64,000 nt of DNA from Macrostomum lignano (GCA_002269645.1 NIVC01000163.1:372001-436000), one strand, 5' to 3'; shown: positions 175-58,608, counted from the first letter of the stretch. The notes: generated by a model not told the origin, from the letters alone. Program-made: numbers and translations.

Positions 175-1636
175 TTTTCTACCCTATCGTTACTGCTTCT
201 GACACTTGGACAAGTTTATAGTTCGGTAGCATATCTATATACATTGCTACCTGTTAAATTAAAACTGTTATTCTTATTTGATGCGAAAGAATCTCAATCT
301 GCCTTTTTATAATTAGTTATTATTATGTACTCTGTTTGTTTGTCAGACGCTAGGGCACAAATTTGACTATAAACTGTTTCTAAGTTTGGATTAAAATTTG
401 TAAAAGGAAGCCTACATACTTTTAGCAAATAAATTTCCACCAAATTTATTACTAGACACTTGTTCTGTCTGGTTCTGTTTCCTAATATATCGGCAGATAT
501 TGTGCCTGTTTATATCTTCTGGGCTTGCTGTGGTATGTTCATTTTCTGTTAGAATTGTTTGACAGTTCGCCATCAATTTTCACTGCACTGCATGACCCCA
601 TATAGCACCCACTGACCCCATTTAGCACCCACTGACTCCATCTAGCACCCCTGACCCCCATCTAGCACCCCTGACCCCATCTAGCACCCCCTGACCCTAT
701 CTAGCACCCGTGACCCTATCTAGCATCCCTGACCCTATCTAGCACCCACTGACCCTATCTAGCACCCCCTGACCCAATCTAGCACCCCTGACCCCATCTA
801 GCACCCCTGACCCCATCTAGCACCCCTGACCCCATCTAGCATCCCTGACCCTATCTAGCACCCACTGACCCTATCTAGCATCCCTGACCCTATCTAGCAC
901 CCACTGACCCTATCTAGCACCCCCTGACCCAATCTAGCACCCCTGACCCCATCTAGCACCCCTGACCCCATCTAGCACCCCTGACCCCATCTAGCATCCC
1001 TGACCCCATCTAGCACCCCTGACCCTATCTAGCACCCACTGACCCTATCTAGCATCCCTGACCCTATCTAGCACCCACTGACCCTATCTAGCACCCCCTG
1101 ACCCAATCTAGCACCCCTGACCCCATCTAGCACCCCTGACCCCATCTAGCACCCCTGACCCAATCTAGCACCCCTGACCCTATCTAGCACCCCCTGACCC
1201 AATCTAGCACCCCTGACCCCATCTAGCATCCCTGACCCCATCTAGCACCCCTGACCCTATCTAGCACCCACTGACCCTATCTAGCATCCCTGACCCTATC
1301 TAGCACCCACTGACCCTATCTAGCACCCCCTGACCCAATCTAGCACCCCTGACCCCATCTAGCACCCCTGACCCCATCTAGCACCCCTGACCCCATCTAG
1401 CACCCCTGACCCTATCTAGCACCCCCTGACCCAATCTAGCACCCCTGACCCCATCTAGCACCCCTGATCCTATTTATAGCGGCAGCTCTTATTCCAGCAC
1501 CCAAATTAAGTATGTACAATGTAAGCAAATGTGTTTAACAAAGAAAACTGCGGGCAAAGATAGCAATTTTTCAATAATATGATTTTAGGCTGTACACCAA
1601 GCGGGCACTGTGTGCTATATACTTTTTGTGCTATAA
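175..1636 (+). CDS. Possible 3' exons of an unidentified hydrophobic (membrane) protein gene entering from the left edge
   Basis: Phase-consistent candidate exons 175-225, 347-383, 497-532, 1498-1520 and 1589-1636 give FSTLSLLLLTLGQVYSSTLGHKFDYKLFLNIVPVYIFWACCAPKLSMYNAVHQAGTVCYILFVL*. Donors GTATGT (533) and GTAAGC (1521) and acceptor TTCCAG (1497) are strong and bracket the 19-bp array. Two other donors are weak. No homolog recognised. Confidence 0.35.
592..1470. repeat. 19-20-bp minisatellite (CTGACCCCATCTAGCACCC), about 45 copies
   Basis: Directly visible tandem array, lying inside candidate + strand intron 533-1497. Confidence 0.97.
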
Positions 1637-2299
1637 GTTTATTTATTAGCCATGAATGTCATTACTATTACTATTAAATTTAATAAAATTTCTTTTTTCA
1701 AACCTCTGTCGTTCACCATGCATATGCAATGCTATAGTTAGACAGGAAGTGCATTAATAAATATTATTGTTATACACATCAACAACACAGAACACATTAT
1801 ATGTATCTTGCTTGACTGAGTACAGTATTATGTTTTATACATTATAAATATCTGTAGGAAACCAAAGAGTATCATTATTAATATACAATAACTACAGCAG
1901 TGCTGAGACTACCCTTGCGGTAACAAGCAACGAGAGAAGCATCACAGCTGCGGATATTCAAATTATTCGTTAAATTACAAATACATGCAGAGTATTGCTG
2001 TCAGATACCAAATAAAAATCTGTCTTAGCGTGTACATCATATACTACTGTTATCGAAATCGACAAGTAGCAGCTACGCTCGGATCGAATAAAGCCTTGTT
2101 GCAACATTCAAAATACGCATTAAAGAGAAAGAAAGAGTAACACGAAAATTTAAACGCTTTTAAATCCATTGACTTAAGCATAATTTAAGTATTAAAACTC
2201 TAAAAGCAAATGACTACTTATTATATTATAGTTATAAATGAGCCAATGATGATTCTTGAACTGCTGAAAATCCAACACAAATATTTTGATGGGGATCAA

Positions 2300-2570
2300 C
2301 GGGATCTAGATTAGGATAAATGGGATAATTAGGAGCACGATTGGGATAATGGGATCAGGATTGGGATAATTGGGAACACGATTGGGATAAATGGGGTCAG
2401 GATTAAGATTAGATAGGATGAGGATTGGAATAATTAGGAGCAGGATTGGGATAAATAGGATCAGGATTGGGATAAATGGGAGCAGGATTGGGATAAATGT
2501 GAGCAGGATTGGGATAGATGGGAGCAGGATTGGGATAAATGAATGGAATCAGGATTGGGATGATGGGGAT
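2300..2570. repeat. 21-bp minisatellite (GGGATAAATGGGAGCAGGATT)
   Basis: Visible tandem array downstream of the STX6 stop. On the - strand it is followed by an acceptor-like GGATTTTCAG ending at 2264. Confidence 0.93.
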
Positions 2571-2700
2571 CCAGACTTCTAGATTCGATATCTGCATGTA
2601 GAAAGCTTTAATTTAGACCTCAGGATCTGCACTCCTAAAACAATTTTAATTAAAATGAGAAAACTGCAATTCATCAATCAGCCATCGTTACAAAACCAGT

Positions 2701-4130
2701 TCACAGTACAAACAAAAGCACAATGAGAATTATGAGCACTAGCAGTAACACGCCAATCACAGTCCACTGTCGCTTATCGTTAGACATGTGCAGCACTCGG
2801 GCCATCTTCTTCATCGTGGTGTCCAGCTTGCTTTCGGTGGTGTCCATCTCTCGCCCGAATTCGTCCAAAATCACTGCCTGCTCTTCCAGTTCGCTGTTCA
2901 TGCGGTGCGAGATGTCTTTGAGTGCGCCGATGCCACCGCTGAGTCTAAGGTTTGGTGGTGAGGGGGATAAGGCGCCTTATTTTATATGCCAGGTTGATTG
3001 ACAGCTCGGCAACACTTCGATTGAATCCATGGCGGATGGTGGTCCAGCAAATGAGGATCTAGGAGGCTGGCCCAGCAACTGAGGATCTGGGAGGCTGGCC
3101 CAGCAACTGGGGATCTGGGAGGCTGGCCCAGCAACTGGGGATCTGGGAGGCTGGCCCAGCAATTGAGGATCTGGGAGGCTGGCCCAGCAACTGAGGATCT
3201 GGGAGGCTGGCCTAGCAACTGGGGATCTGGGAGGCTGGCCCAGCAACTGAGGATCTGGGAGGCTGGCCCAGCAACTGGGGATCTGGGAGGCTGGCCTAGC
3301 AACTGGGGATCTGGGAGGCTGGCCCAGCAACTGAGGATCTGGGAGGCTGGCCCAGCAACTGGGGATCTGGGAGGCTGGCCCAGCAACTGAGGATCTGGGA
3401 GGCTGGCCCAGCAACTGAGGATCTGGGAGGCTGGCCCAGCAACTGAGGATCTGGGAGGCTGGCCCAGCAACTGAGGATCCGAGAGGGTGGGAGCTGAGCT
3501 TTAGAATGCGATGTCTGGTGCGGCAAAAACAATTATGTCTCACCTATCCAAAGTCTCATCCTGTTGCCTTAGCAGCAGCTGCTGAGCAGCCTGAGTCTCC
3601 TCTGCATAGTTTGGCAGGGCCTGCCTGCTAGAAGAGGCGCCACCACTGCCGCCGCCAGCTGCCCCCGGCTGCCGGACGGAGGTAGCAGTGGCCGGGGGAG
3701 TCACGGCTACCGGAGTGTTCGGCTCCAGCCGTTCGATCTTGGCCTTCATCTCTTGAGCTCGTTGACGAGTTTCGCTGACGAATCCGCGACGAGCGGCCAC
3801 TTCGGATTCGTCCAGACGGAATTTCCTCGGATTTCGTTCAACAATACCGATGGTCTCTTCGAGATCGTCCAGATCCCATTCGATGTTGCGTAGGGAGTTC
3901 TGCAACTCGCCAAGGCAATAGTCTAGCTCCTGCCTGCCCACAGGGTTGGAGGCCAGGGTTTTGTACTGGCTCATCAGGATGCTCCACCGATCGAAAAGTT
4001 TCCTGGCCGACTCGACGTTGCGTTCAACATCCGATTTAACGGCAAAGAATGGGTCCTCGATTGAACCGCCGCCGCCGCCTCCGCCAACAAGAGGCTGCTG
4101 CTGATTGGCTGCGGCTGCCGATGACGTCAT
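2701..4130 (-). CDS. STX6: Syntaxin-6 (Qc-SNARE), 2 exons, 276 aa
   Basis: Exons 4130-3544 and 2944-2701, intron 3543-2945 (GTGAGA...CCTTAG, phase 2). N-terminal EDPFFAVK...DLDDLEETIGIVERNPRKF Habc domain, SNARE motif QDETLDRLSGGIGALKDISHRMNSELEEQAVILDEF and a C-terminal TM helix match the STX6 family. Confidence 0.95.
3041..3480. repeat. 28-bp minisatellite family A (GGGAGGCTGGCCCAGCAACTGAGGATCT), copy 1, in the STX6 intron
   Basis: About 15 tandem units. The same unit occurs at 19387, 25008 and 42028. Confidence 0.97.
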
Positions 4131-4244
4131 TGCGTTTTTTTACATGAAAAAATAGATATAAAATTCGTTAGCTAAAAATGAATCTGTGGGATCTAGAAAT
4201 CTATATGTATGTGTGTGCTTCCATAAAATAAAAAATGGATTACA

Positions 4245-4453
4245 CCCGCCTTAATGGGCAGATGTCAAACCGACAGGTTGTTCAGTCCAAGGACTGGGGG
4301 TCGCCACACAAGCCTCAATTACCCCAGCTGATGCTGGCACCCATTTTGCAGCTGGATGAACTGAAGCAATGCAGATAAGTGTCTTGCTCAAGGAATCGAA
4401 CCCTCGACCTTCAAGTCGTGAGTCTGACGCTCTAACCACTAGGCTACAACCCC
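4245..4453 (-). mobile_element. tRNA-derived SINE (family 1)
   Basis: On the - strand: A-box-like TAGTGGTTAGAGC, B-box GGGTTCGATTCC, then a SINE-type body (CTTGAGCAAGACACTT...GCTTCAGTTCATCCAGCTGCAAAATGGGTGCC). There is no tRNA acceptor-stem 3' half. CTTCCAT occurs on both flanks (4218-4224, 4454-4460) and may be a TSD. Confidence 0.75.
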
Positions 4454-7150
4454 CTTCCATTGTGCTTCAATACATAGCCATTTAAGAATTATTAACTACA
4501 GGTCGACTGTTTGGAAAAAAACATTTCGCAGAAAAGTTCACAAGCCTAAAAAAACTCACAAACCTAAGGTAATTTAAGGAACTCAATGAGTAGCGGAACT
4601 TTACAGAAAATAATAATCCATGCCTGGCATAGTAAGGCTACTTCACACAAATTTCAATCTTGAAGGAAGAAATCGATTTCTAAATCCTGTTTGAAACTTT
4701 CTCTGCTTCCTCTCGGTTTGGGGGGGGGGCTGGTCTTAAGAGATTAGAAAAGTTAATTTTCAGCCTCAAGGCAAGACAAGAATGGCTTTGCTGGCTTTTT
4801 CTATCCATCGCGCATGGAGTTCTAAATAAGTAGATCTAGACTATACTAGCGACTAGCGACTTTCCTCTCAGCAGATACCATCAGATCTCAGAACGGCATC
4901 GCAGAAGCAGAGCAAGCTGATCAGAGTGTCAGATCGGAAGCAAAAACACAGACAGATCTGTGAATGCAACAGCATCTTTACAGCTGTAAGCTTAGTCTGC
5001 TGGCTATGTAATTGCACCGGGAAACATGGGTGGCTTGTAGTAGACCTTTAAGCAAGAAAAAATTAGTGATAAGGAGGTATCAATATATGAGCATATTTGA
5101 GCATTAGCTATACAAAAAGCATTGCTTCGGAACACGCGAGAGTTCTATAGCTTGATTGATTGATCGATCGCTTTACTCATAAAATTAAAATGAGAAACTG
5201 GTCCTTATAACTCGAAAAAAACATCTAAAGTACATCGAAAATTTGGTTGAGGAAAAGCATAGAGAAGTTGACTATATATAGGCAAGTATATCTAGGGAAT
5301 ATTTTACCAGTTTAATGCACATCGAAACAAGGTTAAAATACAAGCTTGTCAGGATGTCTATGGCCAAAAGGCTTATGCATAGCAAAATGAGAGTTTCTTT
5401 CTAGTGAATTCAGTTACACATATTTTGGTCATTTCATTCAAAAGTTGTGTGAAAAAACCATTGCAATGCCACTGATAGTCTGTCTTATAGTAAAAGGTGA
5501 AATATATAGCTTAGTCAGTTTTTATAGATCTTGTTTGCAGCATGCAAGTATATGAGCATACACAAAACACCTCTAATGCACAATGAACATTATTTTACTG
5601 TCCACCCCCTTCTGTGTTGAGTTTTTTTATATACTCTGTCACTTGGCAACAAATCTTGACAGTTTTGCACATTGCAAAATTTTGCTTAGTCAAGTGTCAA
5701 GGGTACAAAGACTTGGCTGATTGAATACTCAATATTCTAAAGGATGACAAATGTTTCATAGTTCCAAAGATGGCTAACAGGTGCAGATTCCAAGGTCTAT
5801 GATCCACAATTGCCTGGCAAGCATGAACCTTGTGAAGCTGAGCACTTGCTGAGTCCCAAGGTTTGGCACACTTTCTCCCATGGTCTTTCAACCTGTAGTA
5901 AGTATGTTGCTACAGATGGATACTATGTTGAGAAAGCTGCATTGAAGGTTGATGATGATGATGAATGACTATAATTTGTTTCTTTGAGGACAAAACATTG
6001 CTTTTTATATTTTTAAACTTTTATTGTAAGATTATCAGTGGTATTATGATGGTTTTTCACATATCTTTTGAATGCAATGGCCATAATACATGCAAATAAA
6101 TTCATTGGAAAGAAGATATATACTACTTTAAAATTGTACCCCTTATAATTATCTATATTGTATGCTTTCTTTTTTAACATAGGACTATTTAATCTTGAGA
6201 GATATCAAAATAAAGATTGAACATACTAAGATGCTCAAACAAGCAACTAGAAAGTACTATAATAAAGTAAAGAAAATGTCCCAAGCATATAAAGGTGCCA
6301 AGTGCCAAACTGATATCAAAAGTACAAAGGAAAGAAATAATAATAACAATATAATAATTTTTTACCAAACTTTTTTATTTTCTTAATAAAAGCAACATTC
6401 ATTTTGTTAAACTTGTAGGCTTTTTTAATTTTGAAAAATCTATTTAGTTCTATTACATTTGCTATATATCTATGCATACAAGGTTACACTTAGAATGTGT
6501 GCTAAGAAGACTTGGTTAGGTAACAATGATAGCCACCAACTATGCTATATATATGATATAGTTTTGATCAAAACTATGAAATACAAAAAATCTATTTTAG
6601 CATTGATTAGTAATTAATTGATTTCTTAGACAACATGCAATCATGTTTTGATTTCTTGAGAAATTGAGAAAAAAAATTAAATAAAACAAAGGATTTAAAA
6701 AAATGTCTGCCTAACAAAAGGAAAATCAATTATTTTCATTTTTGATTGCAAGTCAATTATTATTAAATTAATGCTTACTTTCTATTTTTGATATATTTTT
6801 GATATTTTTGATATTTTTGAGACATAGAAAAGCAAACTAAGGCAACAAAATGCTGGGCAACAGAAAGCATAGGCATTGAAAAGCATAGATACTGATTACT
6901 GATTATTGATATTGATTAGTGTCAAAATTTAGCCAGTACACAGACAATAAATAAAAACTAAAAAGCCTATGATGCAATCTATTTCAGAATCAGAATTCAA
7001 TTAGTCAGTTTTTTCTCTAGCATTCTTACAATGCATTTCAAGTTGAAAGAGCTGCTTGACCTTTGCAAAAAAGCATGTTTTTTGAATATTTAATCCCTTG
7101 AGCATTGAGCAATTTCTTAGCCACATTGCATGTACTGTCACGGAAAATTT

Positions 7151-7260
7151 TCTGATTGAACAGTGCAAGTTTGAAGAAAGTTGGTTGAGCCATTTTTGCT
7201 AAAATTGATCGCATACCTAGATAGATAGATAGATACCTACCAATAGACCATTTTTAGTAT
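7151..7260 (+). repeat. Dispersed repeat, second copy at 59110-59205
   Basis: TCTGATTGAACAGTG.AGTTTGAA...GTTGAGCCATTTTTGCTAAAATTGATC...ACCATT.TTAGTATA is shared by both sites. Confidence 0.8.
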
Positions 7261-8874
7261 ATAGATTTTAAATCTTTTGGCAAAAACGCGATCAAAATTG
7301 GTGAAGAATTGCAATCTCTAGAGCATTATGACATTCAAGTATACAAACTTTAGAGATTTAGTATATTTAGATAGTGAAGAATTGCTTGCTCTAGAGCATT
7401 ATGGACAAGCATACAAACAAACAAACCTTAGAGATGTAGTATATTTAGATTATAGAATATAATTCTATAGCCTAATTAACTAAATTTATATTTGGTTTAA
7501 GTTAATTAGGTTAACCATAAACAAATTTTAAGCTAAAACTTTAAGCTAAAACAAGAAATTGTTAGGGCCTAGCCGAAGATTATATAAGCACCAAATATTA
7601 ATTTAAACCATTTAATAAGAGCATTCAAAGATATATTATAGGCCTATATGGGATAAAGGTCATTATACTAGGTCTAATAAGGCACTTCAATGATAATTAG
7701 TTGTTTTAATAACAAGTTACATCTATGATAAACATAGTTTGCCTTTGGTAAAAAAGGAAACAATTGGTTAGAGGTCATTTTAGTAATATTATACAATATT
7801 ATAGGCCTAATATTATAGTATATACAATGATAAATGCACAACATAATACTTAGATTAAAAGTCAAAGTTCATGAATTATGATCAGAATTAGATTTACTTT
7901 TTATTTATTGTATTGTATGTGATATCCAACTAGCAAACTAAAACTATACTAAGTCGTTTAATGACTAGAGTGAGTCATAAAATTATAACAGCTAAAAGCT
8001 CAATTTATTTCTTGCATGGACAACACTAAAGATAGCCAAGATAGGCGTAATAATATGCAAAACATAGCATAAACATAACATAACAAAACGACCGAGTGTC
8101 ATCCGTTGATATGTTTGTCGAGCTCATCACAGTCAGTAGCGGTATTACATGCAGATCTCAAGCCTGTGAGACACACGGAACAACTTGGACAAGACAAGAA
8201 TCAGAATGATGTTGAATAACGTTATAAAATCTCGAAATTTCTCGAAAAATCACAATGCATTAGTAAGTCAAATGGCGAGGTGCAACAATACAAGGTTTTA
8301 AACAAACTGTTATTTAAAAATAAAGGTCTGTATGTCGCTATAACTTTCGTAAAGCAATGTTAGGTCTAAATTTATACTAATGCAATAAGTTCCTCGAAAG
8401 TGAAAAACCGTTGACATATAAAACTAAAAAACAAACTATTTAACTTTATTATATGCACGGCATTTTTTACTTTTGAACAAGCAGCATGTTTAACGCTAGA
8501 TTGATTATTATAAATCTACCTGAGGCGAGGGCCGCAGTCGCATCGAGATCATTGCTTTTCTCAGAAATATTTTTTTAATTTCTATGCTTACCACCGCTAT
8601 TTTTTGCTATTCTATGAAGTTTTTAACCTTTCATCCAGAATTCAAACGACACCCCACTCAATAAATTGATTGATGCTGCAAGATTTGCATTCACACCTAG
8701 CTTAGCTAGATTGAAAATTCATACCCCTCTCTACAATTTTCCATGAAACAGCTTAGTGAAAGTAAATTGATTTAGTATTATTATTATTTACCTACTCCTT
8801 TCAATTGATAGGCAGATAGTTATGCCTAGGCCTACGCCTATGGACTATGGTCACTGGTGTTCTGTGTAACTGTG

Positions 8875-9057
8875 CAGTAGTGCAACCAGAAATTTTTTGA
8901 GGGGGGGATTCTTGAGGGTAAAGACCCGGGAGGGGGCGGAGGGGTGGCTCTGTTTTTGGCAAAAATTCGATTGTTTCCCCCTTTGATTTTTTCAGTCTCT
9001 GCCTAAGGGGGTGGCAACCACATGGCACACCCCACCCCCCGCCTGGTTGCGCCACTG
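8875..9057. mobile_element. hAT-type MITE, 183 bp
   Basis: TIR CAGTAGTGCAACCAG versus reverse complement of the right end CAGTGGCGCAACCAG. Flanked by 8-bp near-duplication TAACTGTG (8867-8874) / TTACTGTG (9058-9065). An 8-bp TSD is typical of hAT. Confidence 0.75.
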
Positions 9058-10363
9058 TTACTGTGTTAGGTGGTAGGCGGCATAGGCCTAACCTAAGAAA
9101 GAATGAGTTGAATACCAATCAATGGCTAGGGCTAGGGCCTAGGCCTATGCTACAAAGTCCAAGTACCAAAAGTTGTCTAGCAAAGTTTGCTACATGCTAC
9201 TTGCTAGCCATATAGGCCTAACCCTTTTATATAATAATAATAATATATTAATAATTCCAGAGTCCTATAGAGTATAGAGTAGGTTATAGAATGTATTGCC
9301 TATAATCGGCAATATTATATTTTGTCTAGAGCTGCTATTGAGTTTTTAAGAATTCAATTGAAAATTATATTTAAGATGGTTGTAATATTTTAATAAGTTA
9401 TAAAGTTATAATATTTCATTTAGTTAGACTGTCAATAAGTGTCAAATAGATTCTAGATGTTTAGAACCCCCTATATGGCTAGGCCTACAGCTAGGCCTAG
9501 TGCCTAGTAAAATGTAGAATCTGCAATGGGATCAAAATGGAATACTACAGTAAAATTCTAAATCCATAATGAAATGATAAATTATAAAATAAACTACAGA
9601 TCATACTAACTTTAAATAAAATGCAAATGCAAGGCACTATGAACTATAAATGTTATTTATAATAATAAAACTTTGAAAAATTAGACCAAACTGCTAGAGA
9701 AAATTAGGATTATATTTTCAATACCTATCTGCTATCACTTATAATATTCATGAGAGAACTTAAATTTACTACTTTGAATTTGCCTTATGCTTAATAAATG
9801 CTATTGTTTTAGTACAGTTTGCCTTAATATAGAATCATATTTTAAAATTCTTTATATATTGTTTTCATATAGTTACATTGACATGGTTACATATAAATCT
9901 AAAGAGTTATTTAGAATTGGTGTATATACTAATATCAATTCAAAAAATTATTATTTTTCAATTCCCATACTTCTAGCTTTGCTTCAATTCTAAAGACTTG
10001 CTTCAATCTGCAAGTCTTTTTGCAATTTATCATTTTGTAGCAGATTCCACATTTTATTGTGCTATTCTATTCCATTTTTACATTTTACTGGTATCAATAT
10101 AGCTAAGCCTATAATGATTTATCTATAGTTTTTATGTAATATGTATATATATATATAATATATATGTATTTTGTATATATTACATTTTTTCTTCAATTTT
10201 TGGCTTATAAAATTGTTGGAATAAAAATTTATTACTTAGTTTTGCTGCTATCCTGGTTAGTCAATCATTATTCTCTTTCAATTAGATGTCCATACATATA
10301 AAATTGGTAACTTTTCTTTATTACATTTAAGTTATCTTTTTCAGAAGCAACAATCCAAATAAA

Positions 10364-16300: not shown

Positions 16301-16777
16301 GCGGCATTTTTATCTACCTTTAATCTATAAGGGGTGAGATTTGTATCTACCTCTAATCTAAGGGGTCAGATTTCTATCTACCTTTAATCTACAAGGGGTG
16401 AGATTTCTATCTACCTCTAATCTATTAGGGGTGAGATTTTTATCTACCTCTAATCTAAGGCGTCAGATTTCTATCTACCTCTAATCTAAGGAGTGAGATT
16501 TCTGCCTTCCTCTAATATAAGGGGTGAGATTTCTATCTATCTCTAATCTATAAGGGATGAGATTTCTATCTACCTCTAATCTATAAAGGGTGAGATTTCT
16601 ATCTACCTCTAATCTACAAGGGGTGAGATTTCTATCTACCTCAAATCTACAAGGGTGAGATTTTATCTGTCTCTTATCTAAGGGGGTGATATTTTGTTCT
16701 GTTTGACTTTTCCGCAGGTACCAGCAATTCGAACTCAAATGGAGGTGCCGCCGAAACAGCAGAAGCCGCCCACGCCA

Positions 16778-16808
<31 letters not shown>

Positions 16809-19386: not shown

Positions 19387-19848
19387 TCAGTTGCTGAGCC
19401 AGCCTCCCAGATCCTCAGTTGCTGGGCCAGCCTCCCAGATCCTCAGTTGCTGAGCCAGCCTCCCAGATCCTCAGTTGCTGGGCCAGCCTCCCAGATCCTC
19501 AGTTGCTGGGCCAGCCTCCCAGATCCTCAGTTGCTGGGCCAGCCTCCCAGATCCTCAGTTGCTGGGCCAGCCTCCCAGATCCTCAGTTGCTAGGCCAGCC
19601 TCCCAGATCCTCAGTTGCTGGGCCAGCCTCCCAGATCCTCAGTTGCTGGGCCAGCCTCCCAGATCCTCAGTTGCTGGGCTAGCCTCTCAGAGTGTCAGTT
19701 GCTGGGCCAGCCTCCCAGAGTGTCAGTTGCTGGGCCAGCCTCCCAGATCCTCAGTTGCTGGGCCAGCCTCCCAGATCCTCAGTTGCTGGGCTAGCCTCTC
19801 AGAGTGTCAGTTGCTGGGCCAGCCTCCCAGATCCCCAGTTGCTGGGCC
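19387..19848. repeat. 28-bp family A, copy 2 (inverted relative to copies 1, 3 and 4), in a candidate CSPP1 3'-UTR intron
   Basis: Reads AGATCCTCAGTTGCTGGGCCAGCCTCCC on +. Bracketed by GTAAAT (19366) and CTGACTATCTGCAG (19870), followed by AATAAA at 19875 and 19894. Confidence 0.95.
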
Positions 19849-19961
19849 ACTTCTACCTGACTATCTGCAGAATTAATAAATTATCTCCTTCCTAATAAAA
19901 ACTGTTTTTATAAATGTATTCTACTAGCTAAGATAAAATGTTTAATGTGAATAACAGTCAC

Positions 19962-36188: not shown

Positions 36189-36245
<57 letters not shown>

Positions 36246-36298: not shown

Positions 36299-36361
<63 letters not shown>

Positions 36362-36372
36362 TTGCCTGTCTA

Positions 36373-36407
<35 letters not shown>

Positions 36408-46789: not shown

Positions 46790-49684
46790 AATGATGCTGT
46801 CTCGGTCTTCGAATTGCGACAGCTTAATTTATCTAAGGCTTTATCTCTGCTGAACTTTTGTTGGCCACCTTCGACGGAAAACTGAGATTTAAGGAAATCA
46901 AGGTTATTAGTTATATTTAATTTTGAATACAATAATTAAGAACAAAAAATTATTAAGAAAAGCACACTCTGTAAGAGACGAAAGAGACTTGAAAATAATT
47001 TTTAAGGACGAAATATTGCCTGTTAAAATATCACTTACAGGTGATTCAAAATAAAGTTGAAAATAGTAATTTATAATAGCTGTTTACAGACAGTCGTAGA
47101 ATGTAGTTAAATGATAGCTAATTGTCGAGTAAGGAGACAAGAAAACAAAGTAGAGAACTTGGAAAACGTGAACTAAAGCCTGTGGGTGTAATTCTTACAA
47201 AAATGAATAACCGTTTCTGCGTTAATAAAAAGTAGGAATTTAATTGACCGCTTTAAGTTTAAAATGGAAATAAACAAGAAATCTAACACACTAACCAGAG
47301 CTTCAAAAAATAATACCAAATCTACTATTTTTGCTTATATATTTTAAAACACAAAAAAACGATTTAGACAATTAGTTACCGAAACTTTATTCAAGAAACT
47401 ACTGAAAAAAGTTTTAGTTAATGTTTTCTATCCATTATACTCAAAAATACTTAAGACAATTAATTTTCGCAGAGAATAGGTTACTCATTACTGCAACTAA
47501 GAAAACTATTAGTTACTGAACTTTTAATCCAAGAGACCGCTGCCAACTGGTAATTTTAAAATATCTTGTACTTACATCTCTACGAATGTAGTTCAAGAGA
47601 ATTGAACACTCTAGAATAAGGTGCAGCAACTGTTGCAGTTAAAAAATACATTTAAAACGATTTAATAAAAATATCGATAACAATAAAGTGAAACAGCAAA
47701 CTCTAATTAATAAACAATATAATTGAAGCGTCAATAACTAGATTGCCAAAACGGTAAGAATAAAAAGCTGGCAGTGAACGTAAGATACTCCGAAATATTA
47801 CACTGAAATTTATAAGCAAGTTTCCATAATCATTCGTGCGGCATTAAGAATCAGCTGATTTGTGTGACCTTAAATGACCTTTCGTTTGCAAGTTAAAAAA
47901 CAAAATTGAAATGATTTAAAGTCTTAATTGAAGTTTCGTGTACCAGATAGTGACATAAAATAACGTGGTGAAAGTTACAAAGTAAATTAAACATTACAAT
48001 AAGCGGGATCGAATAATATAGGCAATTTATCCTCATAAGAAACCGCGACCACACAATAAACGTATTATTAATGGATACATAAGGTTATGTTTTTATTAGA
48101 ACTAAATGAGCCATAACAACTATTGATACATAATATATAGAAATATTGGCCCATTAAGATTCTTTTAACCGAAATTTCTAGGCTTAAATAATAAATAATA
48201 CATACGAGCATACGTACTGAATAAAATATGGGATTTAATAGCGCGAATGACGAACAAACACGCAAGGACAGGAGAGATACAGAAAAATGACAGCAAATGT
48301 CACTGGTTGGTTTGCTTTCATCCGAGAGAGAACTTAAAAATCGCTTCTACAATTAGAAGGATTAATAATTAGGGGCAATTATTTCAACAAAAAATAAGCA
48401 ACACATTAATTGACAAACCATATCAATTAGTAGAATCTGGAGTAAATATTGAAATTATTATTTTTTTAAATTAAACTTGATCAAAACAATCAGCTACACT
48501 ACATTATAAGCACATCGATGGATTTGCGTAATGGCGCTTCTATTAGAATAACAAAAATAGACACACTGTAAACATCTATAGTTTTGGCGAAAAATTGAAA
48601 ATAACAAACAAAAAAATATTGCTCAATTTCGGAGTGAGTGATAAGCGACTATATTAAAGAGCTATGAAGAAGCTAAATAGCGCTACAAATTGTTTCTTAC
48701 ATTGATGTATATATATACGACGGAATCTAAATAAAACAACCGTTTATTCTTTACTTTTCGAATTAATTTTCAGCTAGAAAAATACGCATTGACTCTACTT
48801 AGAATGGTCAGCGTCTGATTGGAGTTTTTTAGATAAATTTACGATGCCAAGTTAAAGAATCTTGTAAATAATCTCAGGTTATTGATGAAGTGTAAAATCA
48901 ACCTTTACCAAGCGTATTTACGAGCTGACAATTACAAATAAACAATGCAAGTTATTGTCCGAGTAAAGCATCATCACTGCACGTGACCTCAGAGGTCGAT
49001 GATGGATCACCACTTCAGTGGCATTTATTGGTCGTCACATCGCGAATTGCAGTTTACCTTCTCCACTCTAGTTATCAATAAAATTAGAGCACCACGGGGT
49101 ATTCAGATACTTAAGCATGCACGAAAGAAATGCATGAGTTTAAATTCAGTCATTTCTTGTGTAGAATTTACTTATTTCTACTAAGTTATTAAAAATCCTA
49201 AATATGGTACTACAAGTATGCTGCTAATGAGTTATGCATTTTGCTGTTTGGCCAACACTAACCTAGCGCGTGGGAACGCTAGGTTGCTAGTCTATTTTTT
49301 AACAAGAAACACTTACTTAAAATTCTAATTGATAATTAAGGTAAAAAACATAAAGAGAAAATGTACTACTGGTTAAATAAAACCACACTTAGTCAAGCAT
49401 TTTTATTGAATTGTTTATTAACCAATTATAAAAAAAGCACACGAATTGCACGTAAATGCAATTTTGTATATAATAATACGCAACAAATGTAGATAAAAGC
49501 AAAATTAATATAATACAAGACCGCGTTTAGTTGCTACGCAAAATTTAAAAAAGCAATGAAAAAAAAGAAAAAATCACGTGGATAATAAAATTAATTGTTA
49601 TTAATAAAATGCCATTGACGTTTGTAACGCTATGAGGAAACAATTGACTACTTAAAGTAAAAGCCAAACTGCCAATGCTTGGAA

Positions 49685-49932
49685 CGCTGGGAAAAAATTG
49701 CAGCGACGACACTCTGACGACAAGCAACGACAGCCCTGTCGATTAACTATTGATTTGCTAAAATAAGTATGATTTGTTCAACTCAGTAGTATCGTTCAAA
49801 TGCGCGCTTCCAAATCTGCTTCGCTGCCTGCTTTCTATCGGCCTCTGATTGGTCGACTGCCAATGGCGACGACAGGGTGACTAGTCGTCAACTTCTCGTC
49901 ATCAAACTGTCGTCGCTGAATTTTTCCCAGCG
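49685..49932. mobile_element. Non-autonomous TIR element, CMC/EnSpm-Chapaev-like, 248 bp
   Basis: Left end CGCTGGGAAAAAATTGCAGCGACGAC...CCCTGTCG versus reverse complement of the right end CGCTGGGAAAAATTCAGCGACGAC...CCCTGTCG. 3-bp duplication GAA at 49682-49684 and 49933-49935. Superfamily inferred from TSD length and terminal motif. Confidence 0.72.
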
Positions 49933-49997
49933 GAAGATACAGTATCTAAGCTGTTTCCAGGAAAAAACACAACTATTTACTTGCTAGCGATCTTGGA

Positions 49998-50918
49998 CTA
50001 ACCGTTTCCACAGAGTTGGCCGTTGACCGTTCCCATTGTGTCGCAAGATTTTCGGCGTTTTTTAGCCTCCAACAGCCCGCCTCTCGGATTAGTGTTCTCA
50101 TTAGAAACTCGAGGGATTCCCTGTTTCCTCTTTTGGATCGGTAGAATCCGCTGGCTGGGCGGCAGGGCGAAAAAACGCAACCTCTGTGGCATCGGCACAG
50201 ACGGGTTGGCGCCGTGAAAGCAGAGGAAATCTAAGAAATCGCCAGTACGAACCGGATTTCCGGTGCCAGGATCTACGCAAAGCTGCGGCTCAATCTGAGC
50301 AGCCTCGCTAAGACGTCTAACGGACGCAAAGCCGGAAATTCCGTAAGTTGACGATGGAAATGAGATTCGACTTTTTTGGTTAGACTTTTTATTGTCGATT
50401 GCAGTGATAGAAAAATTCGATTCCGACATTGTTCGCTTTCGTTGACTGAAGTTACTACTTAAACCGGAAGTGCCACAATTGGGACCGGAAGTCACACCGG
50501 AAGTGATACTACTGGAACCGGAAGTGTCGCGATTGGGACCGGAAGTCACACCGAAAGTGATACTATTGGAACCGGAAGTGCCGCAATTTGGACCGGAAGT
50601 CACGCCGGAAGTGGTACAACTGGAACCGGAAGTGCCGCTATCAGAACCGGAAGTCACACCGGAAGTGCTATTAGAACTCGAATCGCGCATACTACGCAAC
50701 AGAGCGCGACGCAGTTGTATTTCTTCTGTCCATAGCAGACCAAGAAAGCTGGATGAAGAATTCGATGCAGACGATGTCGAGTGGACGACAACTGTAGATG
50801 AAGATGTAGAGATTGACGAGGAGGCTGAAGCCTCAGCCAACTCGCGCGATCTGGTTCTTGGTCGGCGATTCATGCACGGAAATGATGAACAAGAAAAAAT
50901 ACTTGTATATACTTGCAT
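49998..50918 (-). CDS. Orphan single-exon protein (306 aa, or 291 aa from ATG 50873) with a UIM-like helix and 18-aa TSG repeats
   Basis: Uninterrupted ORF in AT-rich surroundings. EEIQLRRALLRSMRD fits the ubiquitin-interacting-motif pattern (acidic-x-L-xx-A-L-xx-S). Basic C-terminal patch KKRRK. No family recognised. Confidence 0.55.
   Translation of the reverse strand: MQVYTSIFSCSSFPCMNRRPRTRSRELAEASASSSISTSSSTVVVHSTSSASNSSSSFLGLLWTEEIQLRRALLRSMRDSSSNSTSGVTSGSDSGTSGSSCTTSGVTSGPNCGTSGSNSITFGVTSGPNRDTSGSSSITSGVTSGPNCGTSGLSSNFSQRKRTMSESNFSITAIDNKKSNQKSRISFPSSTYGISGFASVRRLSEAAQIEPQLCVDPGTGNPVRTGDFLDFLCFHGANPSVPMPQRLRFFALPPSQRILPIQKRKQGIPRVSNENTNPRGGLLEAKKRRKSCDTMGTVNGQLCGNG
50462..50668. repeat. 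54-bp in-frame coding repeat containing 11 perfect CCGGAAGT motifs
   Basis: CCGGAAGT at 50464, 50485, 50497, 50518, 50539, 50572, 50593, 50605, 50626, 50647 and 50659, with one mismatch copy at 50551. Confidence 0.93.
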
Positions 50919-51664: not shown

Positions 51665-52546
51665 TTAATACCAAAATGTTTCCCGCCTTGGCCCAGGCTC
51701 TGGCAAGTTCATTTCTGCGTCAATCTCTTCTTCAAATGTTTTGCTACTAGGCCGATAGGTGGCATTGAGCAGGTCGGCTTCAGGCGTATCGTGCTGCTCA
51801 TTCAGCAGGTACTGACTAGGCCTAGTCTGGTCGTCAAGAGTCTCCCACTCCAACGGTAGGGGTATAATACGCCCCGTAGCCAAAGCGACTCGAACAAGTT
51901 CGCCAGCTTCATTTTGACGCCATTCGGCTTTAGTAGGCTGTTGAGTTTTCGGGTCTAGCAGAGACAGACTGTCCAGACTGATTAGATTGGCAACAGTCCC
52001 CAGCTGGTTTGGCGAATTGCCCTGCTGAACATAATCAATATTCAGGCCAGAAACTATGGCGGCTCGTTGCATTCGTTGAATATAGATCACGCGACCAGAG
52101 CGCATCTCGCCGGAAGCTACAGCGGAAGCGTTCACACAATCGGGATGCTTAGGATCCGTTACTACCACGATGTCACCCGGATAGATGGTCTGATCCTGCC
52201 AGGTCAGACCACTGATTCGCTGGGCCCGGCGTCTACCGTCTGGGTACTGCACAGTCCAGGTGACATCCGGGTACACATACTCGGCTATGGTGTTAGCCTG
52301 ATCCCACGGATACTGCTCGCTAAATGACCAATTAGGATAGCCCTTATCTGTGGCGCCAAACAGTCGCCGATTAACTAAATCTTTCTGCTGATGAGGCTTC
52401 GAGTCTGGCAAGCCGAAGTACATAGACTGAGGCTGAGGCACAGCCAATTTGTAGCCTAATAATTCGCCGCAGTATTTCACCTGCATACGCAGCAGCCGGC
52501 TGATGTAGCGCGGCCAGTATTGAAATTCGGCACCGCGTGGAACCTT
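51665..52546 (-). CDS. MRPL24: Mitochondrial ribosomal protein uL24m; coding exon begins at an acceptor with no genomic ATG
   Basis: KOW-like IYPGDIVVV, GRVIYIQR...IVSGLN, LLDPKTQQPTKAEWR...GELVRVALATGRIIPLP, TYRPSSKTFEEEI and terminal FWY match MRPL24. The ORF-track start (52594) is GTG. An acceptor TTTGCAG ends at 52547. Confidence 0.92.
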   Translation of the reverse strand, partial: KVPRGAEFQYWPRYISRLLRMQVKYCGELLGYKLAVPQPQSMYFGLPDSKPHQQKDLVNRRLFGATDKGYPNWSFSEQYPWDQANTIAEYVYPDVTWTVQYPDGRRRAQRISGLTWQDQTIYPGDIVVVTDPKHPDCVNASAVASGEMRSGRVIYIQRMQRAAIVSGLNIDYVQQGNSPNQLGTVANLISLDSLSLLDPKTQQPTKAEWRQNEAGELVRVALATGRIIPLPLEWETLDDQTRPSQYLLNEQHDTPEADLLNATYRPSSKTFEEEIDAEMNLPEPGPRRETFWY

Positions 52547-52706
52547 CTGCAAATTGGATTGTGGAGAAAAAGGGGGATGTAATCCTTTGTTCACTTCAGC
52601 TTAATTAGGCTAAATGTTTACTGCATTGCTGAGACAGTGCAACGCCTAACCTTAAATTTTTATTGCAGCTCAGCTGGATGGACCGTCTACGTTTTGTGAC
52701 CACCAA

Positions 52707-53037: not shown

Positions 53038-53039
53038 TA

Positions 53040-53785
53040 TAGCATTTTGCAGCCCATTTGGGCTTACGCGCAGTTAATTTAATCCAAGATACGTTTGCCA
53101 ATGTAACAGAGCTTTTGTCTATGGTAGCAAGTCTGGTGCAGCGGCATTTAATTTGGTCCAACAAGCATTCATTTGGTCCAAACACTCGTGAGCCATTGGA
53201 CAAACTCTTGCCTTCTCTCAACCGTCTGCAGGTTGTTGCGCACCGCTGGAATGTCAGCGTCTCTACAAGCAATTTTCAGTTGCTTTTCCAGAGCTCTGCT
53301 GATAGTCAAAATCTGATAACCAACTGGAGCTGTTCCCTCAACTTCTGCTGCATTTCGGCAACGTCAACAAAGGATTCATCTCAACTGCATCGAGTAGCAG
53401 TTGGACCTGAGGCTCTCGAGCAACTTTCCTTGGCGATTGCCACCCTTTCGCAGGCAATCTCTGCCGGCAGAGTTTCAACGCGCTGTTGGATGCTGTAAAC
53501 CACCTTTTCTTTTACATTCAGCAACCTTGCAATGTCCTTTGGGTGTTGACCTCCGTCGAGTGCTTCGATCACAAGCCAACGACATTCGTTCAACAGCCTA
53601 GCATATGGTCCACAATTCTGGGACTGAGCTGCAAATGAACTAAATGGACCAAATTGATGCTTGTTGGACCAAATTAAATGCCGCTGCGCCAGCCTTGCTA
53701 CCATAGACAAAAGCTCCATTACTTTGACAAACATATCTTGGTTTAAATTCTATGCGCGTAAGCCCAAATGGGCTGCAAAAAGCTA
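53040..53785 (-). mobile_element. Internally deleted Tc1/mariner-type DNA transposon, 746 bp
   Basis: About 140-bp TIRs (53040-53180 versus 53646-53785), each with two ATTTGGTCCA direct repeats. TA at 53038-53039 and 53786-53787. The - strand encodes an HTH-like remnant ECRWLVIEALDGGQHPKDIARLLNVKEKVVYSIQQR followed by stops. No DDE domain seen. Confidence 0.88.
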
Positions 53786-54649
53786 TATTAAACCTAATCA
53801 AATGTCTATGGTCGAAGCACATGTGAGATAAGCTAGCTATCTGATTGTTTGAATCTATAAAAATTTTATTGTGTAAAAATAAATAAGCAACAATTGAGTT
53901 TAAATAATACACCACCCTGCGTTGTTTATTATTAAACAAGTGAGCTTTTGTTTAAAAAAGACACATTGATACGAGTAAGAAAAGTTTTCTTTTAAAAAGA
54001 CCAACAAATAGACAGCAATTTTATACGATTATATTAAACAAATTAAAACTGTTAAAAATAGACGGATACTAATAGATTAAAATAGAAAGGCAAAAACTGA
54101 ATTATAGGTATATAACAGCTAAACAATGCGCTGTACAAAAGGACAACTGTATAAACTGCACTAAACAAAATGAGCTGAAATTCCAGTTATAATACGCGCA
54201 TAGTAACACCGTAAATTATTGATATTTTTGTTTTAATAAAAGAACAAACTCAAATTGCACTAAATGATACGGTGTGTTGTCAATTTAAATCATAAAATAA
54301 GTAAATATATAAAAGGTCGCACCGGAACTGAGCAGCGGTTTGTTCTCAAAAAAGACTTAAATTAACATTTCGGGACACCAAAATAACACAATAAAAGAAA
54401 GACCGGCTTGAACTCTTTGTTTTATAGATAAAGGTACAGTTTCAAAAAAGAGTACAAAGAGTTAGTATTATAGGGTAAATAGCATATAGATACCAAGCGT
54501 ATTCTAACCATGTTTTTGACAACTGAAATAGAAGAAACGGCCTGTTCTTGCACTAACCTCGGTGCTTGTTGCCTCAGGAGCAAAAGAATGATTAAGCATT
54601 TAACTTGATGTTACACAAGTGAACGCAAGACAGAAGCAACTCAGTCTAA

Positions 54650-55035
54650 GGGGCAGGTCTGAGTATCTCAGCCAATGAGAGATCAAAAGGGGAGAGAGTC
54701 AAAGTTAGCCGGACGAACGTTAGTGTAGGGGGGGCAGGCCTAATATAGCTCAGCCAATGAGAAAGCAGTAAGGAGAGAGGCTAAAATGAGACGGAGGAAA
54801 CTCCGCCTAGGGGGCAGGCCCAATCTAGCTCAGCCAAAGAGAGCAGTAAGAGTAAGGAGAAAGGTCAACTTAGCTGGACGAAACTCAGCCTAGGGGCGGG
54901 GCAGGCCCAATCTAGCTCAGCCAATGAGAGAGCAGTAAGGAGAGAGTTCAGTCAGACGGACGAAACGCATCCTAGGAGCAGGCCCAATCAAGCTCAGCCA
55001 ACGAGAGAGCAGTAAGGAGAGAGGTCAGCCAGACA
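54650..55035. repeat. Five degenerate 77-88-bp units, each with GGGGCAGGCC and CAGCCAATGAG-type motifs
   Basis: Units begin near 54650, 54731, 54811, 54899 and 54976. Confidence 0.85.
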
Positions 55036-55958: not shown

Positions 55959-56579
55959 CTAGCGAATCACTACAGGTGCCCAACGCAGGGCTTCTTCGTC
56001 CAATTTGGCCAATTCAACTGTACGTCGTCCGGCCCCGGCACCGCCGCTGCCCTGACGAACTCGACCACGATCTAGCAGGCGGCGTCGTAGTTTACTGGCG
56101 TCTAGTTGAAGCTGCTGACGCTGCTGCAGCGGCTGAGCAGATGACAGCTGCAGTAATTCCAGACGCTGCAGAGTGCCAGCCAGATCGTCAGCTTCAATGC
56201 CAGTGCTATAAGCCATTTCAGAGATTGAGAATTCTATGCTACTCAAGTCTGTACAGCTGATGAACGAGGCCGATTCCAGTTTGTCAGTTGAGCCGAAAAC
56301 TTTTGCTGATAGCCAGTCTAGCACTGCGTCTGTCCAATAGGCCTTGCAATGTTTTTTGTAGGGGAAGGACAATTGATGCTTTTGTAGTAAAGGCTTCAAA
56401 ATTAAAACACATTTTCATAGAGTTGAATAAGATACTGAGATACAAACATAGCCTAGACCGACAGACAGACAGGCAGCCATAAGGACGGACAACAAAGATA
56501 AACAAAAAATAAGCAAGCTGAGACTGACAGACAAAGACAGCAAGGAAGGACAGATAAACAAACACACAGACAGACAGGC

Positions 56580-56612
<33 letters not shown>

Positions 56613-58608
56613 CAGATAGCTGAGACCGACAGACAGATAGCTGAGACCGACAGACAGATAGCTGAGACCGACAGACACAGATAGCTGAAACCGACAGACA
56701 CAGATAGCTGAGACCGACAGACAGATACACTTAAGACCGACAGACACAGACAGCCGAGACCGACAGACAGATACACTTAAGATTAAGACCGACAGACACA
56801 TACAGCTGAGACAGACAGACACAGATAGCTGAGACCGACAGACACAGATAGCTGAGACCGACAGACAGATACACTTAAGACCGACAGACAGATACACTTA
56901 AGACCGACAGACACATACAGCTGAGACCGACAGACACATAACCAAGGACCTGAGGTCAAAACGACACACAGACAGCAACCGGCGTACCGCCAGACCAACA
57001 TGTCTGTACGAGTCAGCAAAGACAGACTCCTAATCGTTCGTATCCAAGCCTCACCTGATAAGTCAGGCGACCCAAGTCAGACAGTGGTCGCTCGGGCGTG
57101 CCGGGCAGCAGTTCCCTACGCGACAGCAGATAGGAGAAGTCAATTAGGAATCGTCCATAGCCTCTGCGCTGATAGCAAGGCAAAGTCATGATGCAAGACA
57201 AATTGTAACGCTGAGCGGATCGCTTCTCTTTAGAAAAATAGCCCAACAGATTCCAGCCGTCTTGGCGACGTTGGCACAGCACGTAGAATAGAAACGGTTC
57301 AACGTCGAAATACAAAGTCTTATGGTCGAGAAACAGCTTGGCTAATAGGCACAGATTCCGACAATAGACTTTAGCAGATGAGCCGTCAACTTCAAATACG
57401 CTTAAATCGGTTCTGCGATAAATTTCGTTACCAGGCGGATGGCGTAATTGGCAAGTTTTGAGCAGATGTCTAGCTAATACGTTTGCAGACTTAGTGTAGT
57501 GCAGACAGAAAGGACACAGGTGCAGCACTGCCAGGTGCAGGTACTCAGACGGATAAGGTGCCGAGTACCAGCAGGAGATACGGTGCTGACCAATTTGAAC
57601 AGCAGGTGGTAGAGCTAAACCGCTACTCAACTCGGCAACTCCAACCTGTTGCTGGGCAGCAGTTGGCGCGGTAACTAAGCGAAACAGTTCAACATCCTCA
57701 GCCGGAACTGGATCTGGCAAATCCGCAATTGCAACAGTCTGTTTTGACATTGAAACGGATGGAGATTCAACGCAAGCAAGAGAGGAATCTTCGTCGGCCA
57801 TGCGACTGCTATCTAGGGTTCCTTCGCCATCAAAGCCAACTGTTGGACAATAATTATTCGACGCTGCTGACTGTTGCTGACAGCCGCTGCGCTTTCGATC
57901 GCGTTTAGAATCGGCGTGATACAGATGAGATAATCCATCGTATAGGCCTTGATCGCGTCGTTTAGTACGCTTCTTATAAGAGTTCGGCTTCGCAATTTGG
58001 GAATTATTCGATTTTCTAATTCCCGTATTGTTTTTCGACTTCGGCTTAGTGCCGGCTCTCTTCCGAATAGAGGACGCGGCCATCGGGGAATTAGGAAGCT
58101 TTGATGAAGAAGTTGGCGTCAATGGTGGAGTGACCGGTCTAAACGCGACGCCGCCAAGGGTTGGCGCATAGTCTGTGAGATCTTCGAACACCAACGATCG
58201 ATGCGAAGAATCGCTGCCATCGTCATTGTCGCGAGTGTCTTCATTGTCTGCCGCCGCCAGATCCGGCCTGGGAGAATCAACGCAACGCCAGACTGTTGCA
58301 GCTATGGCAGGATTCCTGCCAACATCATCAAGCTTTGTAGAATCGTTAAGAAGCAAATTAGAAGATTTGTCGTTAATTTCATTGCAGCTTTTTGGAACGA
58401 TAGCATAGGCATAATCGTCTGGCTTGCCATATCGCAGGATTAGACCGGCTTCTGCAGCCGAATTGAGAGCCTCTTGGACGCGACCAGTGGAATGAGAAGA
58501 GTTTAAGATTTTAGCAATTCGCTCCAGTGTTGGGCGACGTTTACGCTGACGAATCAGCTCGATGCAGCTCATGATGGCTGGTAGGGGTGCTGCTGAGCAG
58601 CCTGGCAT
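55959..58608 (-). CDS. KAT6: KAT6 (MOZ/MORF/Enok)-type MYST histone acetyltransferase, 2 exons, 645 aa
   Basis: Exons 58608-57055 and 56342-55959. N-terminal [20 protein letters not shown] resembles KAT6 WH1. Linker motifs LYDGLSHLY and EDVELFR resemble KAT6. The MYST domain has the C2HC finger (CPFC...H...C), [16 protein letters not shown] and [11 protein letters not shown] catalytic motifs. Confidence 0.88.
56455..56940. repeat. GACA-derived microsatellite/minisatellite (GAGACCGACAGACACAGATAGCT), KAT6 intron
   Basis: Directly visible. Confidence 0.94.

Follow-up and report, generated by a model that had tools for sequence, protein, structure and literature searches.

The coding introns in a 64-kb stretch of the Macrostomum lignano genome (the window; assembly Mlig_3_7, contig NIVC01000163.1, ~372 to 436 kb) are mostly inflated by tandem arrays, most of which consist of units found at no other site that we analyzed. 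An array was present in 19 of the 21 coding introns longer than 300 bp and in none of the 5 short ones (83, 94, 134, 175, and 245 bp). The pattern was repeated independently in 8 of 8 introns at a second locus, L003, which lies on another contig and contains a 40%-identical CSPP1 paralog, such that 27 of 34 introns carried an array when both loci were taken together. The core result is, thus, that ~80% of introns are inflated. Array positions are stable, and copy number is changing fast. The explanation that we lean toward is a neutral, in-place expansion of nonmobile, mostly private minisatellites that is tied to transcribed noncoding DNA.

Results

We modeled six genes in the window, with a total of 26 coding introns, using an exact-match spliced walker and splice-site weight matrices fitted to annotated M. 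lignano proteins, and the models were exact or near-exact compared to those proteins. The GenBank annotation of Mlig_3_7 derives from a genome-guided RNA-seq transcriptome (PMC5730564), and exon models that reproduce its proteins therefore have indirect RNA support. Arrays of at least 100 bp were called with Tandem Repeats Finder (TRF) in the window and L003, which together span ~110 kb. We identified 27 such arrays in the window, which, along with one 150-bp two-copy duplication, amount to 16.5 kb, or 25.7% of its length. The intronic 20% of the noncoding backbone held 19 of these 27 arrays (P = 3e-8), and arrays accounted for 63.5% of intron bases, 32.5% of other noncoding bases, and 0% of the 14.9 kb in pure 5' tracts, which we defined as upstream regions that are not also the 3' flank of another gene. 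The only long introns that lacked an array were the first introns of the CSPP1-like gene and TTC13 (Table 1), exactly as stated in an earlier note made from the sequence of this stretch. That note had counted arrays in 20 of 22 long introns and in none of six short ones; the pattern holds with our counts of 19 of 21 and five, and one of the extra pair was probably a plus-strand intron starting from GTATGT at 533, which is a candidate only. The three intergenic tracts that it named (4.5 to 10.3, 47 to 50, and 58.7 to 64 kb) were indeed without an array and contained only a two-copy 78-bp duplication (7301 to 7450). However, its broader claim that intergenic DNA lacks arrays did not stand, given that 8 window arrays (5.0 kb, 32% of the remaining noncoding DNA) and 3 arrays in L003 lie outside confirmed introns.

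After subtraction of the array, host introns were mostly ~40 to 290 bp, and their median length was 185 bp compared to 175 bp for array-free introns (p = 0.65). Host introns are, in other words, short-type introns inflated by an array. Given that the two classes do not differ in length once the array is removed, the contrast between long and short introns drawn earlier holds as a count and is largely tautological as a relationship, since the array itself makes the intron long. The arrays ended 4 to 174 nt from 5' splice sites and 18 to 143 nt from 3' splice sites, with one exception at 646 nt, and each array takes up nearly all of the free room between the splice signals or from the stop codon to the 3' end.

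Unit lengths across 48 arrays in the window and L003 were 18 to 24 bp in 22 arrays, 16 to 33 bp in 34, and at least 10 bp in 44. Head-to-tail arrays of ~10- to 100-bp units are what is understood by minisatellites, or variable number tandem repeats (VNTRs). Of the 44 arrays whose unit is 10 bp or longer, 37 had no related unit elsewhere in the window or L003, which mostly supports the earlier impression that units are unrelated. Units that did recur were those of a 28-bp family and of three (GACA)n arrays, and a pair of arrays in TTC13 is related. GC content was 0.54 in exons, 0.50 in arrays, 0.355 in intron backbone, and 0.307 in 5' tracts (0.31 to 0.38 in nonrepeat noncoding DNA overall). 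The arrays are therefore not simply amplified backbone, given that they are GC-richer than the noncoding DNA around them; their GC level might be due to GC-biased conversion during array exchange.

The locus (10.9 to 48.3 kb in the window) was found in three copies, namely, the window contig, NIVC01001087.1 (L002 and L005; copy 2), and NIVC01000922.1 (L006; copy 3). Outside arrays, the copies are mostly 98 to 99% identical, with the window copy more distant from copies 2 and 3 than those two are from one another. The sequenced M. lignano line has hidden polyploidy and an extra large chromosome, and the presence of three copies fits with both. The site, unit family, and splice-site distances of every array were constant across the three copies, with neither gains nor losses at intronic sites, and the short introns were unchanged. 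Array lengths across the copies were, for example, 656/860/1,528, 463/1,164/1,164, 1,273/232/401, 863/289/289, and 708/1,273/786 bp, with changes of up to approximately five-fold in 3' flanks and two- to three-fold within an intron. This combination of a fixed position and variable copy number among recent copies is characteristic of a minisatellite or VNTR. In addition, we found higher-order periods in several arrays (19-bp units with periods of 155 and 174 bp, 33-bp units with 159 and 192 bp, and 19-bp units with 96 bp), which are typical of unequal exchange and point to its action. Copy 2 also contained a 5.7-kb degenerate, CT-rich, low-complexity block of (TCTCTTC)n/(CT)n (L002 21871 to 27631, at window ~26387) that was shorter in copy 3 and absent from the window. 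A transposon was ruled out for the copy 2 block, as it is low-complexity DNA without transposon-like open reading frames (ORFs).

Arrays outside introns were found downstream of genes, with a spacing from the stop codon of 0 nt for an ankyrin-repeat ORF, 7 nt for the nuclear receptor gene in L003, 23 nt for TTC13, 131 nt for the STX6-like gene, 137 nt for the Ly6-like gene, 296 nt for CSPP1b, 788 nt for the CSPP1-like gene, and 927 nt for the MYST-type acetyltransferase gene. Among resolvable annotated genes, 7 of 8 3' flanks had an array within 1 kb compared to 0 of 6 pure 5' flanks (Fisher P = 0.002); the ankyrin ORF was outside this 8-gene count, and its (CAGA)n array was entered under the 3' flank of the Ly6-like gene. 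We did not find an expanded array in the pure 5' tracts of the window or in the 2.8-kb divergent spacer of L003. Small seed tandem duplications occurred at 1.65 per kb in intron backbone versus 1.43 per kb in 5' tracts, and since these densities are similar, it is expansion that differs between the two compartments and not seeding. Coding sequence, stop codons, and AATAAA motifs were the only guides to transcript extent. Four stop-adjacent arrays were scanned, and none had an AATAAA or ATTAAA between the stop codon and the array or a usable donor on the gene strand; such arrays probably sit in 3' untranslated region (UTR) exons.

Discussion

We hypothesize that short tandem duplications would arise everywhere at a similar rate and would grow to hundreds of base pairs or several kilobases only within gene bodies or 3' regions. 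This growth could occur through replication slippage together with unequal sister-chromatid or gene-conversion exchange and may be stimulated by transcription or transcribed chromatin, through transcription-replication conflict, R-loops, or H3K36me3-linked repair. Selection would trim arrays only at exons, splice signals, and perhaps promoters, and the long-intron class would then be a by-product of arrays that have no sequence-specific function. The earlier note had suggested a transcription- or splicing-coupled process. Its transcription half fits with our observations, given the arrays in introns and 3' flanks, the empty 5' tracts, and the equal seeding. Its splicing half was not supported, given the arrays 0 to 140 nt after stop codons and the lack of a usable donor in the four that were scanned, and splicing itself is not required for array growth. 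We considered, more tentatively, that M. lignano has a mutational process, tied to transcription units and not acting upstream of genes, that turns short duplications into kilobase-sized minisatellites, with most intron DNA and much of the tandem-repeat load and doubled intron length of this species as by-products. Simple and tandem repeats make up 15% of the M. lignano genome (PMC5730564), and the mean intron is 1.1 kb in M. lignano compared to 0.56 and 0.69 kb in two congeners (PMC10468722).

Several points weigh against expansion tied to transcribed DNA. Our sample consists of two independent loci and paralogous copies, and we infer a stimulus from transcription or gene-body chromatin only from the distribution of the arrays. 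A two-strand splice-site scan covered the 11 arrays in the window and L003 that we counted as nonintronic, some of which could lie in unannotated introns. The 5' tracts are also slightly AT-richer than the intron backbone (GC of 0.307 versus 0.355, with arrays at 0.50), and composition or GC-biased conversion could contribute to the distribution that we observed. Two of the three long first introns are array-free even though they are transcribed, and the 28-bp family means that some seeding by dispersal occurs. Finally, selection that purges arrays from regulatory DNA is a rival explanation.

In the strict form of this rival, expansion is equal everywhere, and selection removes arrays from promoter and enhancer DNA and from exons, which we regard as possible and the most serious of the alternatives. 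The arrays stop a few nucleotides from splice sites and stop codons, as if selection alone sets their limits, seed duplications are no rarer in 5' tracts than in introns, and the two long first introns without arrays are AT-rich and belong to a class of introns that often holds regulatory DNA. However, tolerance alone needs all four tracts of 2.8 to 6.2 kb (17.6 kb) to be intolerant of any insertion, and intergenic DNA is normally more repeat-rich than introns. Moreover, in copies 2 and 3, a 3' intergenic site holds an extra 3- to 6-kb block of CT-rich, low-complexity DNA. The narrower suggestion that arrays are tolerated only where they are spliced out is weakened by the stop-adjacent arrays, which are most likely in 3' UTR exons.

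We also considered that preformed repeat DNA, in the form of satellite circles or a repeat-only nonautonomous element, integrates at breaks in open, transcribed chromatin. The 28-bp unit TGGCCCAGCAACTGAGGATCTGGGAGGC was found in five unlinked arrays within ~110 kb, which differ in orientation and occupy both introns and 3' flanks (the STX6-like intron, downstream of the CSPP1-like gene, between TTC13 and the ankyrin ORF, GRIP-golgin intron 2, and L003 40153 to 40484), and the three occurrences of (GACA)n point in the same direction. Dispersal is nonetheless unlikely to account for the arrays, given that the units of 37 of 44 are unique in our sample, that no intronic array was gained or lost among the three copies, and that a comparison of the flanks of the five 28-bp-family arrays revealed no common flanks, terminal repeats, or target duplications. 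Extrachromosomal circles and ectopic conversion are guesses as to how a pure 28-bp array might have spread. MITE- or Helitron-borne repeats were rejected, as there were no conserved arms or terminal inverted repeats beside the 28-bp-family arrays, and a mobile-element origin of the arrays or of the AT-rich tracts was rejected because a repeat-masked self-comparison contained almost no interspersed repeats. Introners and introner-like elements resemble the arrays in being intron-associated repeats in a lineage with heavy intron turnover, but they form families whose near-identical members extend across the entire intron and supply its splice sites. The M. lignano arrays are private, sit 4 to 174 nt inside unique flanks in older intron backbones, and have no shared termini, and the flanks of the 28-bp arrays were not shared.

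A role for the arrays as length or timing spacers, splicing regulators, or sources of small RNA is improbable. Nearly all nonfirst introns have an array, as such a role would lead one to expect, and intronic minisatellites in Caenorhabditis elegans have been linked to complex alternative splicing (PMC4039745). However, array length is unconstrained, with a range of 131 bp to 14 kb, and the two- to three-fold changes within introns and approximately five-fold changes in 3' flanks occurred between near-identical copies, which contradicts the earlier suggestion of length-adjusting spacers. Units are unrelated as well and have no orientation or composition bias relative to the transcript and no structure signal. 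On the sense strand, 12 of 30 arrays were purine-rich and 15 of 30 had a positive GC skew, and there was no Rfam match at the gathering threshold in the 64 kb. Hairpin-driven slippage was rejected because the self-complementarity of units did not exceed that of shuffled sequences (median z = 0.14; 4 of 42 below -2), as was selection against cryptic splice sites on the sense strand, given that such sites were neither depleted nor in excess and were rare on both strands. The lack of a strand bias, cryptic-site signal, hairpin excess, or Rfam family argues against a function at the RNA level. The upper end of the length range is a single 14-kb array of 23-bp units (L003 11994 to 26068) in the 17-kb first intron of the CSPP1 paralog, and this array has 269 strong donor-like sites on the antisense strand.

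The age of the introns bears on whether arrays make introns. We aligned both M. lignano CSPP1 paralogs with the protein of the snail Biomphalaria pfeifferi, the one outgroup used, and mapped intron phases. The snail ortholog (64 kb, 32 introns, exact model) contained only four arrays of 200 to 310 bp, or ~1.7% of the locus. The snail has an intron at the same position as three array-bearing introns, namely, CSPP1-like intron 5 in the window (ELRQQ/VEE) and two in L003, and arrays thus colonize existing, ancestral introns. Compared to the 32 snail introns, there are 7 and 8 in the two M. lignano paralogs, which have just the first in common, and several array introns interrupt well-aligned motifs that are uninterrupted in both the other paralog and the snail, e.g., YDPFG^KGGGG (intron 4 of the CSPP1-like gene). 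These differences imply heavy intron loss in the lineage and possibly some gain. A comparison with orthologs of the kind that the earlier note had proposed came out as ancestral for three introns and as lineage-specific or ambiguous, with the snail as the only reference, for several others. The single shared position and the array introns absent from the snail are what one would expect if duplications or insertions in exons had been intronized or had generated introns via a duplicated AGGT segment. The array in L003 intron 7 is the sole suggestive case; this array of ~38 20-bp units (33260 to 34033) crosses the exon-intron junction, takes in the exon end, and has a donor-like CAG/GTGGGT in each unit, and the intron position is unique to that paralog. 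Given that the last 10 nt of the exon are the first half-unit, this case points to an in-place origin. As a general route to these introns it is, however, scarcely credible, since at least three array introns are ancestral, the units are generally unlike the flanking exons (no unit-exon similarity in 27 of 28 intronic arrays, on which basis the AGGT route was rejected), and arrays also occur outside coding regions. An artifact of long-read assembly in repetitive DNA can be dismissed for practical purposes: M. lignano is notoriously difficult to assemble (PMC5730564) and array lengths vary between contigs, but units and sites are identical on three separately assembled contigs and the exact splice junctions reproduce annotated proteins.

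Expansion in place within transcribed noncoding DNA has partial parallels elsewhere. The earlier note knew of no named system that explains the pattern; the mechanism is indeed without a name, but an intronic excess of tandem repeats is documented in Chlamydomonas and Daphnia pulex. The genome of Chlamydomonas reinhardtii is ~12% tandem repeat, with satellites and microsatellites concentrated in genes and introns and transposable elements between genes (Zhao 2014; Craig 2022; PMC9940879, PMC9977147), and these repeats expand and contract fast and cause assembly gaps (PMC9940879, PMC9977147). The likeness to M. lignano lies in fast-mutating tandem repeats that are overrepresented in introns. 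However, Chlamydomonas, a green alga, has a genome that is compact and GC-rich, and neither near-saturation by one private minisatellite per intron nor a 5'/3' asymmetry is described in the papers on Chlamydomonas that we examined. In D. pulex, an animal in which introns likewise exceed intergenic DNA, tandem-repeat density is highest in introns and units longer than 6 bp are important, a situation called rare in animals (Mayer et al. 2010, PMC3152781). Daphnia has a low overall density, short arrays, and strandedness, whereas two thirds of intron bases in M. lignano are array and there is no strandedness. Classical minisatellites are similar in their 10- to 60-bp units, lengths of hundreds of base pairs to several kilobases, higher-order periodicity, degenerate edge units, often marked strand asymmetry, and fast copy-number change. 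Those of humans are found near chromosome ends and recombination hotspots and in a small minority of introns, in contrast to 27 of 34 introns here. The introns of Drosophila Y-linked fertility genes (PMC6508621) are almost wholly tandem repeat that is transcribed through and spliced out, but these are megabase-sized simple satellites in a few testis-specific genes, whereas the M. lignano arrays are 0.1 to 14 kb and occur one per intron in ordinary autosomal-type genes. We found no account of the pattern in the Macrostomum literature, a search that did not cover the 2015 genome paper (Wasik et al.). An intronic excess of tandem repeats is, thus, already known, and M. lignano is a striking, unusually extreme new example.

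If the pattern is genome-wide, it would explain the difficulty of assembling and annotating M. lignano, the doubled length of its introns relative to congeners, and the location of most of its tandem-repeat load. Of our observations, the 5'/3' asymmetry and the equal density of seeds most merit genome-wide attention. M. lignano would then also be a tractable animal for the study of minisatellite expansion in transcribed DNA, given that transgenesis is available and that the recent genome duplication provides natural replicates; if a transcription-coupled process is at work, it could be directly measurable through transgenesis and the three near-identical copies of the locus. For annotation, repeat masking strips most intron sequence and some 3' UTRs, and the removal of transcripts that overlap repeats loses real genes.

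Other features of the window

Table 1. Genes, introns, arrays, and array-free tracts in the window
Feature	Position	Strand	Details
STX6-like gene		-	1 intron
CSPP1-like gene		+	7 introns
Ly6/uPAR-like gene		+	127 aa; 2 introns
TTC13		-	12 introns; 920/928 residues equal to paralog protein, itself encoded exactly by its own locus
GRIP golgin		-	3 introns; 1712 aa vs 1713 annotated in paralog
MYST-type acetyltransferase gene		-	at least 1 intron
19-bp array	593-1473		~45 copies; higher-order periods 155/174 bp; 1.2 kb 3' of STX6-like stop; outside confirmed introns
21-bp array	2321-2569		131 nt 3' of STX6-like stop; no convincing splice-site pair on either strand
STX6-like sole intron	2945-3543	-	28-bp-family array 3040-3490
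Divergent 5' intergenic tract	4128-10351		GC ~0.3; no expanded array; two-copy 78-bp duplication
CSPP1-like intron 1	10518-11157	+	640 bp; array-free
CSPP1-like intron 2	11511-11855	+	16-bp array 11685-11815
CSPP1-like intron 3	12504-13316	+	19-bp array 12528-13246, 24 nt from 5' splice site
CSPP1-like intron 4	13720-14191	+	12-bp array 13733-14091; position absent from paralog and snail
CSPP1-like intron 5	14659-15598	+	21-bp array 14787-15513; position common to snail ortholog
CSPP1-like intron 6	15935-16717	+	33-bp array 16039-16694
CSPP1-like intron 7	17051-18085	+	38-bp hairpin-forming array 17200-17997
28-bp-family array	19387-19849		788 nt 3' of CSPP1-like stop; 463 bp, 1164 bp in other two copies
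Ly6/uPAR-like intron 1	20976-21780	+	array 21094-21632
Ly6/uPAR-like intron 2	21906-22737	+	22-bp array 22075-22644
(CAGA)n array	23079-23955		between convergent genes; directly after ankyrin ORF stop, 137 nt after Ly6-like stop
28-bp-family array	25011-26283		between TTC13 3' end and ankyrin ORF; 1273 bp, 232 and 401 bp in other copies; no splice-site pair
22-bp array	26831-27496	-	starts 23 nt after TTC13 stop; AATAAA ~160 nt past array; probably in 3' UTR
TTC13 intron 12	27880-28628	-	23/35-bp array 27917-28624, 4 nt from 5' splice site
TTC13 intron 11	28914-29430	-	24-bp array 28941-29413
TTC13 intron 10	29945-30545	-	52-bp array 29963-30487, 18 nt from 3' splice site
TTC13 intron 9	30587-30720	-	134 bp; array-free
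TTC13 intron 8	31093-32013	-	19-bp array 31126-31988; 289 bp in other copies
TTC13 intron 7	32275-33779	-	22-bp array 32422-33719
TTC13 intron 6	34008-35320	-	21-bp array 34654-35256
TTC13 short introns	35387-35480, 35552-35634, 36691-36865	-	94, 83, and 175 bp; array-free
TTC13 intron 3	35711-36622	-	(GACA)n array 35795-36521
TTC13 intron 1	36927-38263	-	1337 bp; GC 0.26; array-free
GRIP-golgin intron 3	40552-41308	-	16-bp array 40710-41275
GRIP-golgin intron 2	41785-42248	-	28-bp-family variant array 42041-42228; 627 bp in copy 2
GRIP-golgin intron 1	42657-42901	-	245 bp; array-free
Golgin 5' upstream tract	46790-50000		AT-rich; array-free
54-bp repeat	50453-50667		4 copies; within ORFs open on both strands
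77-bp array	54638-55034		927 nt 3' of MYST-type acetyltransferase stop
MYST-type acetyltransferase intron	56343-57054	-	23-bp/(GACA)n array 56549-56940
MYST gene 5' upstream tract	58576-64000		AT-rich; array-free

The upstream exon reads on in an open frame (LLCPLLHP...) through the array in intron 4 of the CSPP1-like gene, yet the array is spliced out in the annotated protein. Exon 7 of the same gene contains (CAG)19 (16781 to 16837), which encodes a polyglutamine run whose length differs from that in the cluster representative protein. Intron 2 of TTC13 has a GC donor (GCAAGT; 36860 to 36866) that is kept in the paralog, whose model gives the annotated protein exactly, and the TTC13 copy in the window is seemingly without annotation. 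The ankyrin-repeat ORF (23959 to 24738, minus strand) and the MYST-type acetyltransferase (55962 to 58575, minus strand) are likely genes that seem to be unannotated, and a mitochondrial ribosomal protein L24-like ORF (51668 to 52600, minus strand), with a Pfam match slightly below the curated cutoff, is another likely gene; none of the three appears in the list of called genes for the first part of the window or in the one protein search that covered them. An inverted duplication with 90% identity (53038 to 53180 and 53645 to 53787) surrounds ORFs with a helix-turn-helix match, which together are probably a decayed Tc1/mariner-type transposon. A ~150-bp element common to the window (60779 to 60924) and L003 (1395 to 1542), with 80% identity across these unrelated loci, is probably a small interspersed repeat.

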